DNA of 64,000 bases from the NCBI GenBank assembly GCA_023515725.1, contig JALDTO010000155.1, positions 469,147-533,146 of the forward strand. Reading direction: 5' to 3'. Positions 50,113-61,094 of this stretch are shown here, piece by piece; the first letter of the stretch is position 1, and each line of letters begins with the position of its first letter. Under the pieces are notes generated by a model that did not search any database, was not told the DNA's origin, and saw only the letters and a list, made by a program, of their open reading frames with translations. This stretch comes from Amoeboaphelidium protococcarum X5 (lineage: Eukaryota > Fungi > Aphelidiomycota). A program made the position numbers and the translations under genes.

Positions 50113-50338
50113 TTACTTAATATGATATGAGAGTTATATTATATTTCGTTATAGGAAGTACTGTAGATGACGTGTTTCTTATTTCCCCGTTGCCTGTTTC
50201 AAAACAATCGTCACGCGCGTTCAAAACTTTAAACACCCAGCTCTCTCAGTCACTATCCTTTCTTCATTCTGATATTGATATCTATCTACATTCTCATTTA
50301 TATCGACTCACTTATAATCGAAAAACTTTGCCTTTAAT

Positions 50339-51403
50339 ATGAAGACTCTTCTACTCGGACTGTTGTGCTTGATTACTCTTCTGGCCTTGGTTGTTGCATC
50401 TCCGCTCGTGAAAAGATAAGAGTATTCCTCAGACAATGTTGTTGATATGGAAACTATTGCTGATACCGCTCCTGAGCTATCAACTTCCGAATCATTGTAA
50501 AATGTCAACTCAGAGATTTCTGCTGCTATTGATAAACTTGAAGATGTTACTAATGACGACTTTGTGAATGAAACCATCCAGTCTGATGTTGATGAGCAGT
50601 TCAAAGATATTGCAGTTGAGAACGAAGATCGCGCCGCTGAAACGGGTGAAACTGTCAAACTTGTTGATAACGCTGAAACAGCAACGGTCAATCTGAACTC
50701 GACTGCAACTGAATACGCCGCCGTGGCTGAAGACTACACTGAAGAAGCTCTCAAGAAACAACCTGACAATGCAGAAATTGAAATATCTGCTGATGGAGTA
50801 TAATTGGACAGTGATAGTGAAACTGACTAGTAGTATCAAACAATTCCTTCCGATATTATTGACGAAGAAACTAGCACAGCTCTCCTGGCTTCTGGTTTCA
50901 CGCTACCACCTCTTGTCACTCCCACTGTATAGCCTGATTAAGCCTTGACTTATGACGCGTAGAGATAAGTCGTTCCTACTGACGCGGTTAGTCAACTATA
51001 TGAAGAAGCTTAGTACCAGGATGATGAAAATGAACCTGAAGAGCCTGAAGACATGATTAATGATAATCCTGATATTATTACTAGAAGGGCATCAATTCAA
51101 GAGAACTAGGTATAGTAGCAAGCTTAAGGCTTTCAAAGCACTAACACGTAGTCAGCCGGTGTTGAACTAAAGAAAGACGCCAATGAAAAGGGTGGCTCTA
51201 TATACTCCATCATCTCTGCGGTAATACTGGCATGCGCAGTTGTAGCTGCATTGGTGCTCTATCTGTAGAGGGGACAATTTAAATAAGCTGCGGCACCAGA
51301 GGCTGACAGTTTAGAGGCGCCACTGACAAGAGAAGGTTTCCAGATGGCAACATTCAGTAACAAGTAGCCATACAGTAGAGTATTAGCGGCTGAAGACGAT
51401 TGA
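50339..51403 (+). CDS. Acidic type I membrane / surface protein
   Basis: Signal peptide followed by SPLVKR|Q (Kex2-like), D/E/T-rich ectodomain, TM IISAVILACAVVAALVLYL, cytosolic YSRV...EDD. Confidence 0.75.
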
Positions 51404-54297: not shown

Positions 54298-54653
54298 TTT
54301 ACTCATTGTCAAAAATAATATATTCTGCAGGCTTTTTTGTTGCAATCTGTTAGCATCTCGAATATCCCGCTTTAAGGATTTACAAGTAGAGCGTCTCTGC
54401 CGTTCTTGGGCAGCTTTTGGGTGTCATCCATCGGCAAACTTGTTGTTCATAAAATCTACTCACAATGAGCTTTTTTGGCGCGTAGATGGTAGTAGACTGA
54501 AAACTGTGTGGAATAAAGTAAAAGAACTATATCACCAAAACAAATAACATTCATCACATAGAGGTTTTCACGGTTTTAAGGCCGATGATGTACATGAGCA
54601 GTATTACATTCAAAGGACAACGGTTGTTGAGCGGGCTGATGATAGACATTGAA

Positions 54654-55808
54654 TCACTTTCTGAACCAAACATCATCAACTTAGTGCTTAGTTCCATCCT
54701 TGGCATAAAAAGATCCCTTTTGACCATGAAGAACGCCATTACGATAATCATCAGGAGTATGAGCATATTCAGTAACGTCAACCAGATCCGCATCCCCCAG
54801 AGGTTCAAGTATAGCAATATTCGTATCGCTAATGAAACCCAAGTCAAAGCCGCGAGTGTTGAGACACTTTTTGACTGAAGACAATGACACTAGCAGACTA
54901 TCATGGTCCCGCTGTTCCGTACCTCCTTGACATCCAGGTACAGTCTGCATTTCCATGGCCAGCTTATGAAGCGCGTCAAAGCCATTAGATGCTTTATATG
55001 GTTTGCGAGTGAATGGACTCAGCGTTTAATCGCCAAACACCTCATGAATATCAATCAATCCATTTCCATTCAAATCTGACATGGCAAGCATTTTATCGCC
55101 ACCAACTGCACCACCGTGGCGTAAATGTGGGTTAGAAGGATCTTTCGAGATGCCAGTCTTCAGAGACGCGGAGACGACACCATCTTTGTTCATATCAAAT
55201 ATCAATGGACATTCCCCACCGCCACCGCCTTTAGCATTTTTACCAGTACTACGCGGCCTGCTGTTTGACGGGGGCTTTGGTGAGGACGATGAAGGTGGCC
55301 TAGGTCCAGGAGATCGGGGCGTACTAGGTGGATTGTTAGGATCGTCTGAAGGTGGAGGTGGAGGAGGTGGGGGAGTACTAGGAGGACGTGGCGGCGGCTA
55401 CTTGTCAGGAGGAGAAATAGGCGGCTAAGGCGTAGGAGGATTTTGAGGTGGAGGATAATAAGCACAAGTAGTACATGGCACATTAGATGATGGCGTAGAG
55501 ATTATCGGCTACACAGAAGTGACAACTGCAGGTGTTGTGCGCGAGGAGGAAGGGCAAGGAGTTGGAGATGCAACGCAACTTGCACACGGAGTGGCAATTT
55601 AGGGTGGAGCAGCAGTTGTAATTCTCGCAGCAGCAGTTGCCGTAGAGCAGTCTGTCGATGTTGCAGTCTTTACTACAAGAGGTTCACTGGAGCACGGTGG
55701 AGTATTCGCTTACGGGCGATTTATAGGCGGAGATTCAGCAGACGCCAAGATTGAAACTAAGCCGGGAACTAACGACGCCAGGTAAACGCAGTAAATTGTA
55801 TGATACAT
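54654..55808 (-). CDS. Secreted Pro/Thr/Cys-rich protein with C-terminal FrpC SPM-like domain (384 aa, intronless)
   Basis: Signal peptide, Thr/Cys-rich stalk, PPPPPP region, then CPLIFDMNKDG...DLNGNGLIDIHEVFGDQT...NGFDAL...NGVLHGQKGSFYAKDGTKHQVDDVWF. Confidence 0.8.
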
Positions 55809-56528
55809 CGTAACTGATTTTGGTAGAAGTATATTTACACGATAAACAATTTAAATATAAGACTTTGAAACTAAAAAGAAACGAACACCCAGCTATATTG
55901 TAATCACCACTTCAGTATTCTGATTGTGCAAAGTACAATTGAACACAAAGCCAATGAACAATCACTGTTCGTGAAACGGTGACCTGCCAAGTCATCAGGC
56001 GTTGAACACATGTGTCTTTAAGATATCTAGGCATTACAATAAACGTAGGCCCAACAATGAAAAAATACTATGTAGGGATTGCCCCAAATATTATGACAAT
56101 CGATATCTTGAGATTCAAGACAGGACCGGTGAGAGGCACTCCCTCATCCATTAATAACTCCGGGGCGTAATCTTCTTGTTCTTTTTCACGCGCACTATAA
56201 AGGCCGTCGTAAATCAGATATTATTTTACAATGTTTCAAAATGCGCAAAGTAAGTCAACAGATGATGCTATACAAGCATTAGCTAGGGCGGTATAGCATG
56301 TATTATTCCCTTCCGCTGCGATGAGGATTGCTTGGCCATCTGTTCCGTTTCAAACCTCCTTGCCTTGGCTGATCGCCATTGACTCAATAGAGAGCGAGTG
56401 CGTAAACAAACACTTATACAGTACAGCGCGGCATTCCATATCATTGCCATTGTTTTCTTGCTGTTTCAACCTCCATTTTATTGTTAGTTGTAAAGGTGCT
56501 TTAGTGCATAATAATATATTGCAATATC

Positions 56529-59500
56529 ATGAAGTTTTCATTTAATGGAAATGAAGAGTTTTGGTTTCATAGTGTTAAGGATGAGCGGATTGATTTGAGA
56601 GAGCAGGTGAAGAGTGGGAGGCTGTATTTATCGCATGTACAGTCTGCCACTGACATTACGGATGTCAAGGATATCAATTCTTATAACATACTGCGTTGTT
56701 TCAGGTCTATTCTTGATTAAGTTTGCGTATCTGGTCAGGAGAGAGCTAGTGTCGTCCTCTCTGGTGATGTAAATAATGCAAAGACATGCTCCACTTTAAT
56801 GCTTGGCCAGCTGATATTTGAAACTACAGAGGTGGATCTTTTGTCACCATCAAGTGATGAAGAGTTAAAACTTTTGTCAAAAATTCCAAATTCATTTGTG
56901 TCAAAGTACGTGGCTGCATAGAGTGTTGTCGATCTGTTAACCTCTGTGGCCGAGACGCCGAGGCAATGTGTAGAGACTATTGCACATGTTGATCTTGCCT
57001 ACTATCCGTTCAACTATCAACTTATGGGCGTTTAATTTAAGATCAGATTGCCAGATATGGCCACTCTCTCTCAATTTGATGTATTTACCGCTATTGTACA
57101 TGGTATGGACTCTAATCTGAAGAAGGTCACTAACTGCACATCTTCATTGACAAAGTCGCCTCTCGTTAATAATTCAATCTCAGTAGCTGAGGCCTAGTCC
57201 AAATTTTAGAACTTCTATGAATCACTTAAGCTCCTTAAGTTCCATGTGAAGGAGATTGAAGCTGTCATCCGTATCTTTGTTGCAGTTTTGTACATTAGCA
57301 TTAGTGATGTCGATCCGCATGATCCCTGTTTGCCAATTGCTGAAGAGATGTTGGGGTACATTCAGCCTGATGAATCAATTGATATCAAAAAGATCAGAGG
57401 TTTATCTAGACTGATTAAAGAGAGATCGTATATATCTGACACTGGGTTGAATTTTGCAAAGGAGAACAATGCATCGGAGATGAAGTTGGCCAAGGACTAA
57501 CTCTGTGCTAATCTGTACAACTTTGTTTCCAATTGGATAGTATGGAGAGCGAATAATGTCTTGAAGTTAAATCAGAAATGTACCGAAGTTTCGTTTATAG
57601 TAGCCACTGATCCTGTTGGTAGACACTCGTATAATTACCTGTCGTACTTGTATTTGAGATTGAAGCTCTATCAAGATTCTGAAATATTGAGATTTGGTGA
57701 TGCTGAATAGCTTTGCTAGATTTTGGTTGAAGATGATAACAGCATTGTCAACATTATCTCCCAGTCTCTGAATGTTGTTGATGCAGCTACTAGGATTCTT
57801 TTACACTATGGGACTTAAAGTATTGTAAGAACTCGAATTGATGAACTGGATCGAATTATTGTCGATGTTGGGCCATCCATTACATTCCATGTTGATGACA
57901 ATTTTCTGTACCAGGTATAATGTGGTAGTAAAATCAGTCTTGATGTGCTGACATTTCTGCGCAATGAATGTAAAGCCAACAAATTTGTTCATGAGATAGT
58001 CGGGCCTAATTACGTGGAGACCGCTGATATTGACGGATAATTGTTATTTGCTCAATTTATAGAGTTTGGTGGAATAAAGTAGAAGCTGGGAATAGTCCTG
58101 AATAAGCATATTTTCCGTAATCCGTTAGTTGTCTTAACTGATTGGTTGGTCTCATAAGGTGATCTTTATAAGATTGATTGCGCTGTATTCGGGGCTAAAG
58201 ATACATTTGATGTAAGTAAATTGAAATTTAGTTAAACCCAGTTTATAAGTTGTAGTTGGATTTAAGTTTAATCTCGTGTCGGTAGCTCCAGCTTTGATCC
58301 TATTAAGAATCTGCTTAAGTTATTCAACTGCTAGTTTGATGATTAATCTGAAATCTTTTAAGTACAAGATTGGGTCCTTGCTAAACTGCTTATTCGTCTC
58401 AGTAGCAAAAGCGATATTATTCGCAAGGAGAGAGCATAAACTTTGATGTCCAAGTCTTCGAATGCTTTAACTCCTCCTCAATACGTTTCCGAAACCCCTG
58501 CAGTAAGTCCATAAGATCGTTAAAATTGGTATAAGTGCGCATCAGATGAAGCCTTTACATCATCGCGTTCTATATGGTTGAAACTTGTCTGGCTGTGTAC
58601 ATGGTACATTCCTGACTCTTTATACATCAAATATTGGGGCATGAATGATGCGAAAGCGCGACTGGCCAATCGTGAAAAGATCACGCTGTGTGTCTTGATC
58701 GCCATCCTGAATATTCTGTTTGTTTGCGTATTGCCAGTGCTGCAAGCTGCATTATGTCCGCAAATGTCCTCCAATCCTTTCTACGGATTCATGAGTGTCG
58801 GCGAGGTTTACTTGTCTGCCCAATTTACTAGTAAGGCTCTTTTTGTTAAAAATGGCAAAGTTTACGATGCGTCGTTCGTCCCTCTTAGTTTGGGTGATCG
58901 TGCTCAGGTGTATGAATACGCTGGTTAAGACATTTCGGTTTACCCACGAACTGATTCTTTGGCATTCTCTTAATGCAACTAATTGTCGAATAGTAAAATT
59001 CAGGATCTTCGTCGAACAGTGGATGTAAAATCTTATAGGCTGTCTCCATTGCAGAGTATTGCGCCTGTGTTTGACAATTCTGCTGTTTATAAGTATGAAG
59101 TTGGCCAAATTGTGTATGCTGATTTTGGTAATTACCGCAATTATACCAATGGTGGCGTATGGATTTAGATAGATAACTCTGTGTACAATCTTACCGAGTA
59201 TTACGGCAAATTGTATCCGCCATTCTTTGATGACAGAACTGAGGATATTATTCAACGATATGCTGGTAATAAGATACCCAGTGATGTCGTGCTCTAGATG
59301 GAACCCGGCTTTGTTGATTGTTTGGACAAATTGTACAAGATTGGGAAATTTGATTATAGGACAACAACGTCTTGTGTAGCTATATCTTCATTTACCAATG
59401 TTGTGTATTTTATCATTGTAGCCGTGGTATTATTCAAGTTTGCTGCTGCCTTTTCCATCTCATGGAAACACCCGTTTGGAGGTGATAAGAAGAGTAAAAC

Positions 59501-61094
59501 TGATTAATTGCCTGGCAAGCTTCCTAATGTTGTGTACTTCATTCCTTGCTATACTGAAAGTAAAGAAAATATCTAACAACTAGTAAGTGCACTGTCTTAA
59601 AGTGAATATGCAGGTGGAAAACTGTTGTTTATTATATGTGATGGTATGATCGTTGGACAAGGAAATACTATGGTCACACCAGCTATAGTCTTGGACGTGT
59701 TGAAGCACAAAAGAAATGGTGTTCCTTCGTGTTATCCGTATGAATCTTTGGGAACTGATAAGAATTCTATTAACTATGCCTAGATTGATTGTGGTGTGTA
59801 TAATGAGCAATTGCCATACATTGTTGTGTCTAAAGTGGGCCGTCCTGATGAAAGATTCAAACCTGGCAATAGGGGAAAGAGAGATTCTCAGATGCTGTTA
59901 CTGAGATTGCTCAGTCGCATGTTTTATCATCAATAGATGTCGCCATTGGAGCTTGAATTGAATTACTTGGCTCATACCGAGCTTGGTCTGCGTCTTGAAG
60001 AATTTGATGCGTGCCTCATGATTGATGCTGATACAATTGTATCGGAAAATGGTATCTAAGAACTGGGTAGAGTGCTGCAAAAGAAACCAAATGTTATAGG
60101 AGTCGCTGGAGTTACCCAAGTTTCTAATCCTAATGATTCTATATTCACAACGTTGCAGGTCTTTGAGTATTTCAATAATCACTTCTATGCTAAAGCGTTT
60201 GAGTCATTGTTTGGTACTGTCACCTGTCTCCCTGGCTGCTTCTCAATGTATCGTTTGGCGGACATGCAGAATCGAATTCCTTATCTAATTTCCCGCGACA
60301 TTTTGACCGACTATGGTGTAACGCAGGCTAATACTTTGCACGAAAAAAATCTACTCAGTCTTGGTGAGGATCGGTACCTGACCACGCTGATGTTAAAGCA
60401 TTTTCCACGTCGCTTCACCGCCTTTGCTCCTAATGCTCAGTGCGAGACTGCAATCCCTCACTCTTGGTCGGTATTCCTGTCTCAGAGAAGACGTTGGATC
60501 AACTCAACAGTGCATAATCTTGCTGCTCTATATAATGTGTCTAATTTATGTGGATTGTTCTGCTTTAGTATGAGATTTATTGTTCTACTTGATTTTGTGG
60601 GAACGATCATGTCGCCTGGTATGTTTATATATGGACTGTTCATAGTGTTGCAGGCCATCATCTCTCCTCAGGCGCCTATTTCTGCACTCCTGACGATTCT
60701 TTGTGTTGTTGGCTCCCAAGTGCTAATTTGTCTATCTAGAGGTGAATTGAAGATGTTGCTGTACATGGTTGTGAATATGATTGCTTTCCCTGTCTATGCT
60801 CTCGTGCTTCCCTCGTACGCCTTCTACAAGTTTGATGACTTTTCGTGGGGCTCAACGAGGAAGTTGGCTGAGACTCATAAAGATGTTGGTGATGGAGATC
60901 TCAAAGACAACAACAATAACAGTCTCAAGAACGATATGTATAAGATTCCTTTGGCGTAGGTCGATACGGATAATCCATTTTGGAGAAGTGAAGATTACCA
61001 GTTTGCTAAGAGGGTGTCTTATTTTGAACATAACCAAGATGTCCTTTAGGCAGTTTCTCCACTGTCGCCCACGTTAAAATCTGCTGGCGTGTGA
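56529..61094 (+). CDS. Chitin synthase (division 2, class V/VII-like) with degenerate myosin-motor-like N-terminus and cytochrome b5-like domain
   Basis: REKITLC, WIQIDNSVYNLTEY, PCYTE, CDGMIVGQGN, GNRGKRDSQ, DADT, CLPGCFSMYR, LGEDRYLT, SQRRRW, DDFSWGSTR; fragments share one frame. Confidence 0.93.

Follow-up and report, generated by a model that had tools for sequence, protein, structure and literature searches.

A gene in the window (the whole 64-kb stretch of DNA that was analysed) encodes a putative secreted protein of Amoeboaphelidium protococcarum, a fungus-related aphelid parasitoid of green algae, whose C-terminal domain belongs to the structural family of the bacterial protein FrpC's self-processing module (SPM). 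The gene is real, expressed, conserved and under purifying selection, it is intact under its own genetic code, it encodes neither a toxin nor an injected effector, and it belongs to a family of paralogues that probably descends from a bacterial domain and in which the residue preceding the junction Pro is Ser or Cys.

The reading frame holds seven in-frame TAA or TAG codons, and TGA is used as stop. Reading TAA and TAG as Gln is supported by three observations: long open reading frames appear across the 64-kb window only under translation table 6; the column of Gln363, which is Gln in all 59 Melainabacteria-type rows, holds TAA or TAG in several paralogues; and the table-6 translation, for which an earlier note on this DNA had called and which yields the full 384-residue frame, is identical to the public protein P0279. 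The 91-residue fragment that the same note had seen under the standard code was located at 54681-54956. RNA-like runs, judged as such by a GT..AG joint in a neighbouring gene and by poly-A ends, span the gene and reach a poly-A end at 54534, and as they contain no splice joint within it the gene is indeed intronless. For the domain, comparison with the homeologue gave a dN of 0.009 and a dS of 0.295 (dN/dS about 0.03), and the closest database relatives of the protein are, by name, A. protococcarum proteins. Elsewhere in the window, a long gene at 56373-61094 (+) resembles a chitin synthase in its C-terminal part, which has a QRRRW motif; the SPM gene starts 565 bases away from it, an adjacency that may be due to chance. 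A second predicted secreted protein, with a signal peptide, a KR site and an acidic region, is encoded at 50279-51403 (+).

Table 1 Features of the SPM-tipped gene and of its predicted product, in window coordinates.
Feature	Coordinates	Strand	Basis or remark
SPM-tipped gene	ORF 55808-54654	minus	384 aa, TAA/TAG = Gln
Predicted signal peptide, residues ~1-24, cleavage site approximate	55737..55808	-	hydropathy 1.89, residues 4-23
Thr/Ser/Ala/Pro-rich stalk with Cys, residues 25-117	55458..55736	-	composition
Pro-rich spacer, residues 118-186	55251..55457	-	~47% Pro, with a single stretch of eight Pro
Basic/Gly linker, residues 187-198	55215..55250	-	ends in five Gly
Cys200-Pro201, equivalent to FrpC Asp414-Pro415	55206..55211	-	by alignment; codon TGT
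SPM-fold domain, residues 201-384	54657..55208	-	Pfam PF26745; extreme C-terminus
Ca site D205, N207, D209, G210 (FrpC D419/D421/D423/G424)	55179..55196	-	
D238 (FrpC D456), completing the first Ca site	55095-55097	-	
EF-hand-like 12-residue loop D245-E256 (FrpC D462-E474)	55041..55076	-	
Asp260 (FrpC D478), a ligand at the bond-twisting fifth Ca site	55029..55031	-	PMC7078468
Helix-loop-helix in place of FrpC loops D499-D511 and D521-E532	54843..54962	-	
C-terminal strand V377-D378-D379-V380-W381; D379 = FrpC D579, cleavage-port wall	54666..54680	-	
3' UTR, poly-A site ~54534	54534..54653	-	poly-T loose end before 54534, run X2

The predicted product has the architecture that had been claimed for it, with a signal peptide, a Thr/Cys stalk, a poly-Pro region and a Gly linker ahead of the terminal domain (Table 1). 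Hydropathy over 19-residue windows peaks at 1.89 at the N-terminus and nowhere exceeds 0.8 past residue 30, so that by this measure neither a transmembrane helix nor a GPI-like tail follows that residue. The stalk contains no N-glycosylation sequons and, judging from its make-up, is probably O-glycosylated; AF2 confidence is low throughout the region upstream of the domain. The epithet 'extensin-like' had to be dropped: extensins (HRGP) carry repeated Ser-Pro4 motifs, whereas the window protein has a single poly-Pro run ([ST]P3+ occurs once).

To place the terminal domain, the window protein was searched in pieces, or by way of a stop-free paralogue and of database proteins. Its first 62-residue piece had the FrpC SPM structure 6sjw as top match, weakly (E 0.031), and a Cys-Pro orthologue domain compared directly with the PDB reached E 0.0013 over its N-terminal half only; because this direct search was weak, the stop-free paralogue and a family profile were used. 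The paralogue domain matched residues 1-166 of 6sjw end to end (E 1.7e-8), and the profile, built from 123 rows, matched the FrpC SPM with an E of 1.8e-33. Scans of Pfam-A and NCBIfam returned only weak EF-hand matches, with no SPM match in the copy of Pfam-A used, and PF26745 is precomputed on P0279. AF2 models had pLDDT values of 97.7 for the stop-free paralogue and 94.2 for a 96%-identical Cys-Pro orthologue (P0002; 178 of 186 residues identical to the window domain). In structure comparison both models matched only 6sjw and 6sjx, with Z scores of 14.8 and 14.2, respectively, and of about 3 (3.1) for the next structure; the P0002 model fitted 6sjw with an rmsd of 3.1 Å over 144 residues, and Foldseek gave an E of 1.4e-7 and a TM of 0.60 against the SPM. 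As modelled, residues 201-384 have the SPM fold, and the match is not one of chance; the homology that the earlier note had proposed was thus recovered by both of the routes it suggested, profile and structure.

The FrpC structures 6sjw and 6sjx, with their list of Ca sites and the fifth Ca site (PMC7078468), allow the domain to be compared residue by residue. By alignment, the Ca ligands D205/N207/D209/D238 and D245/N247/N249/D253/E256 appear conserved, and the port and fifth-Ca residues D478, D579, G477 and G491 are kept as D260, D379, G259 and G276. The FrpC loops D499-D511 and D521-E532 are absent, a helical segment taking their place, and so is the FrpC W451/W519 pair, whose positions are occupied by Ala234 and Cys315; the Trp pair is missing in Melainabacteria-type rows too. 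The suggested replacement of two Ca loops by a Cys-containing segment is therefore correct in that the loops are gone here, but they had already been lost in the bacterial relatives. Cys293 and Cys315, both within the helix-loop-helix, could form a disulfide specific to the A. protococcarum copies. Overall, the domain shares with the FrpC/ApxIVA SPM the fold from end to end, the Pro at +1, two Ca sites, the D478/D579 equivalents and an N-terminal passenger. It differs in having Cys (Ser in paralogues) where FrpC has Asp414, and in an identity of only ~25%; and whereas FrpC carries RTX repeats and a type I secretion signal, the window domain is C-terminal, lacks both and is mounted on a eukaryotic signal peptide and a mucin-like stalk. 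No HemolysinCabind (RTX) match was found in the protein, whose domain stops at the stop codon and whose signal peptide is N-terminal. It is accordingly a member of the SPM structural family without the Asp-Pro or the RTX context, and is not to be called a clip-and-link module.

An exhaustive search for homologues gave 254 matches. After the A. protococcarum proteins come ~90 proteins of 250-870 residues with the same C-terminal domain at 40-50% identity, and those with names are mostly from Melainabacteria, chiefly Gastranaerophilales, together with one Vampirovibrionales, one Caenarcanales and three Desulfobacteraceae loci (the last assigned from record titles). The nearest kin of the domain is consequently not FrpC/ApxIVA (Neisseria), as had been supposed, but the C-terminal domains of Melainabacteria (Vampirovibrionia), and likewise it is a Melainabacteria cluster that comes closest in structure among the Atlas models (model TM 0.89, rmsd 1.6 Å, against a TM of ~0.7 for classical SPMs). 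Domains such as those of MFA6990089.1 and MDD3150468.1 have the GDKMLAM, FGD.T..PFT and DDVWF blocks in common with the window domain; like the aphelid copies they are C-terminal, have lost the same two Ca loops and are mostly Ser-Pro (51 S, 14 D). Unlike them, they keep an extra DxDxDG loop, whereas the aphelid copies lack this loop and have the Cys pair, and they follow RTX-like or DUF3060 N-terminal repeats where the aphelid proteins have a stalk. The bacterial genes stand singly between housekeeping genes, and the flanks that were read show no obvious secretion operon; the subfamily is patchy, being present in 2 of 120 genomes drawn at random from the class. One Gastranaerophilales genome has three tandem SPM-tipped genes (L059, 917-5239). 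The title 'uncultured Gammaproteobacteria' is misleading for at least one locus (L063, genome G002), which shares its GTDB class with the Vampirovibrionales genome, and records titled 'Muribaculaceae' show Melainabacteria synteny and are probably mislabelled as well.

A. protococcarum is the only named eukaryote among the matches whose names were retrieved, and a second eukaryotic group comes from metagenome contigs that use the standard code. The neighbouring genes on these contigs include IFT80, a fungus-like ArgRS and, on one contig, an aphelid-like RPC2 (best named match Paraphelidium tribonemae, 68%); on contig L043 the ArgRS is 57% identical to those of both basal fungi and A. protococcarum, and the host is fungus-like. 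The environmental proteins have a signal peptide, a KCRxR-like motif and a stalk in common with those of A. protococcarum. Two of the contigs (L114 and L115) encode Asp-Pro, with Ala at the equivalent of position 377. From their sequences, the genes at L114 108-1665 and L115 3037-3693 would be the best candidates for true clip-and-link in a eukaryote; the frame of the former shifts inside the domain, through either an intron or an assembly error.

In phylogenetic trees all eukaryotic rows form one clade (support 100/98), which groups with the Melainabacteria-type domains (100/99) and apart from classical SPMs; a quick search under a mixture model gave SH-aLRT values of 99 and 97 for the same two groupings. 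Nesting inside the bacterial group is suggested under LG+G4, with P0042 as the sister row (97/83), but the mixture model leaves the placement ambiguous, and an AU test of donor-group monophyly was borderline (p 0.045). A transfer from bacterium to eukaryote nevertheless appears likelier than the reverse, since the family has a broad distribution among bacteria and since the bacterial DxDxDG loop, found in classical SPMs as well, has been lost from the eukaryotic copies. We consider it very probable that there was a single transfer, into an ancestor of the aphelid lineage. The bacterial origin put forward in the earlier note is supported by the one eukaryotic clade beside the Melainabacteria-type domains, with no broad eukaryotic distribution among the named matches. 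Host code, eukaryotic neighbours, polyadenylation and purifying selection show that the gene has been integrated and is expressed. A Vampirovibrio-type algal predator would be an attractive candidate for the donor, but the matches are mostly from Gastranaerophilales, with a single one from Vampirovibrionales, and the subfamily is rare among the 120 genomes drawn from the class.

The genome contains 27 copies on at least eight contigs, each consisting of a signal peptide, a Ser/Thr/Pro-rich stalk and the C-terminal domain, and the family is present in two annotated assemblies (locus tags MIR68_ and MP228_). The residue before Pro is Ser in 21 copies, Cys in six and Asp in none. The Cys-Pro reported in place of Asp-Pro is thus present in the window gene without being a feature of the family, and it does not qualify as a defining innovation: it is a minor state in a family where Ser-Pro prevails, its TGT codon is one base off the AGT (Ser) of sister paralogues, and within the group of the four closest copies TGC is used as well as TGT. 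The head domain is strongly conserved and homogenised; the stalks have diverged. Compared with a paralogue 11 kb away, the window domain has a dS of 0.23, as near as its own homeologue, and the stalk a dS of about 1. These near-equal domain distances and far-apart stalks indicate that heads have been homogenised or swapped between stalks. The two genes form an inverted pair (window 54657-55208 and L003, G000:C155:535493-536050), an arrangement that is repeated on contig C146, and the sequences suggest gene conversion of the head domain. A KCRxR motif follows the signal peptide in 23 of the 27 copies and is missing from the window gene. It stands 5-20 residues past the signal peptide, from A. 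protococcarum (L002, L003, L005 and 20 paralogues) to environmental homologues, with KCRxR or KCRxR-like versions in L042, L043, L112, L115 and P0027 (L041; four copies in P0027), and may mark a protease site or provide an anchor for a disulfide.

Pro is preceded by Ser in 136, Asp in 29, Cys in five and Thr in four of 174 dereplicated homologues, a sample in which relatives of the query are over-represented, and no intact copy has Ala, Gly or Asn there. Ser, Asp, Cys and Thr are all side chains used in protein self-cleavage, and together they account for 99% at -1 against 20-46% at positions -2 to -6. On the tree, Asp and non-Asp states were exchanged at least 12 times, and one bacterial locus shows both (Ser in L046, Asp in L050 and L057), which suggests that the two states do the same job. 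In the degenerate eukaryotic copies P0053 and P0103 the -1 nucleophile and the D579 equivalent were lost together. Position 377 is Ala in 20 of the 29 homologues with Asp at -1 and in 19 of the 136 with Ser, which tend to have bulkier residues there; this covariation is strong in the raw counts but not significant among independent pairs (4.0 same, 0.2 opposite, p ~0.125). The Asp/Ala377 pairing, which extends to the two eukaryotic Asp-Pro copies, places the -1 side chain in the port; between the -1 residue and the D478 position there was no covariation. Even among classical RTX-type SPM rows (P0108-P0150), 20 of which are in the tree, 16 have Ser, two Asp and two Cys in this query-biased sample, and the sequences suggest that Asp-Pro is a minority state of the SPM family.

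In FrpC the Asp carboxyl forms a five-membered anhydride (PMC7078468), and the D414A substitution abolishes both cleavage and linkage (PMC7846742). As no A. protococcarum copy is Asp-Pro, gluing through an Asp anhydride is impossible in any of them, and the argument that a missing Asp implies different chemistry is sound in so far as the known reaction is excluded without Asp at -1. We favour self-processing by a Ser/Cys acyl shift, to which we give somewhat less than an even chance. The domain would fold around its two EF-like sites, either outside the cell or while still in the Ca-rich secretory pathway, and the conserved port (Pro201, Asp260, Asp379) would clamp the junction between stalk and head; the Cys thiol or Ser hydroxyl would then attack the preceding carbonyl, an N-to-S/O acyl shift at Glu199-Cys200, so that the head would be shed and a thioester or ester left on the stalk. 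This (thio)ester might hydrolyse, or a nucleophile of the cyst wall or the algal surface might capture it, although capture by a wall or host molecule, and with it covalent gluing, seems unlikely to us. If the Asp and the Ser/Cys forms do the same job and the Asp forms cleave, the others probably cleave too. A precedent for the product exists in the FIIND of NLRP1, whose self-cleavage leaves an N-terminal Ser-Pro (PMC7483925). The known acyl-shift domains (NLRP1/CARD8 FIIND, GAIN, SEA, inteins, Hedgehog), with Ser, Thr or Cys right after the scissile bond, nonetheless offer an analogy of chemistry only: their folds are unrelated, no such structural match having been obtained, and no counterpart of their catalytic His or base was found in the window domain. 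Further points weigh against self-processing. The bond that the SPM twists is -1/+1, but for an acyl shift the strain has to lie at -2/-1; no invariant His or base was found near the junction, and -2 and -3 are variable; the D414A result in FrpC is itself unfavourable (PMC7846742); the domain lacks two of the Ca sites as well as the Trp pair; and Ser, Thr or Asp in front of Pro commonly serves as a turn cap, too.

An alternative is a head that does not cleave at all, a very stable, Ca2+-locked binding or adhesion domain in which Ser or Cys merely caps the first strand in the port. We regard this as quite possible, if somewhat doubtful. D414A FrpC does not cleave (PMC7846742), folding with Ca2+ persists in a non-cleavable SPM (PMC7078468), a mucin stalk with a terminal globular head is the usual layout of an adhesin, a permanent head would gain stability from the new Cys pair, and the distribution of Ala377 (with Asp in 20/29, with Ser in 19/136) can be read as steric packing of the -1 residue. 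A mere cap, however, would tolerate Ala, Gly or Asn, which occur in 0/174; the stalk has no transmembrane or GPI anchor; Asp-Pro copies of this layout occur in bacteria and on the two eukaryotic contigs; and a conserved head on divergent stalks is the reverse of what is usual for a head that recognises a host. The lack of an anchor, together with 27 copies on diverse stalks and a Cys-containing KCRxR that could cross-link N-termini, would suit a protein of another stage, for example one that forms a coat or matrix between host and parasite or belongs to the wall of a resting spore, where the domain would serve Ca-dependent assembly and the junction chemistry would be incidental; we think this rather improbable, since it leaves both the strict S/D/C/T-Pro junction and the coupled loss of the junction residue and D579 unexplained. 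FrpC-like clip-and-link, in which the Cys-Pro bond itself is broken and the stalk joined to host lysines, could call on the retained port residues and on the attachment of cysts to algal walls through an appressorium (PMC3577820), but is highly unlikely: the five-membered anhydride needs an Asp carboxyl, Cys or Ser acting on its own carbonyl would give a four-membered ring, and Asp-Pro occurs in 0/27 genome copies. Contamination, an assembly artefact or a pseudogene, which a bacterial-type domain and in-frame TAA/TAG might bring to mind, is ruled out, at a negligible residual probability, by the host code, the position between eukaryotic genes, the 27 copies on at least eight contigs and in two assemblies, the polyadenylation and the dN/dS of ~0.03.

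For the acyl-shift reading, the likely though putative role would be in building or attaching the cyst, the appressorium or the cell coat, and attachment fits the life cycle, in which the aphelid cyst is fixed to the algal wall via an appressorium (PMC3577820). The fuller version of it, in which Ser/Cys/Thr-Pro SPMs embody a second Ca2+-triggered self-processing chemistry on the same fold, the (thio)ester acylates wall or host and aphelids have acquired the system from Melainabacteria and amplified it to 27 copies for anchoring, is a speculation that we would not expect to hold in full.

The SPM has been described in the literature as exclusive to Gram-negative RTX proteins. The family found here departs from that picture, as it is eukaryotic, enters the ER and lies within a wider group where Ser-Pro is common. 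No paper on eukaryotic or Ser-Pro SPMs was found, and the literature searched on PF26745, on SPM junction motifs and on aphelid adhesion or horizontal transfer contained nothing on it, nor does the main text of a dual RNA-seq paper mention it; the PF26745 match to these proteins is visible in databases, and the family is undescribed in the literature searched. Its members are candidates for the molecules by which aphelids build or attach the infection cyst, with relevance to crashes of algal ponds and to early fungal evolution. If Cys-Pro does cleave, it would provide a new Ca-triggered route to protein thioesters, useful beside NeissLock; if it does not, the family would be a good example of the transfer and repurposing of a domain.
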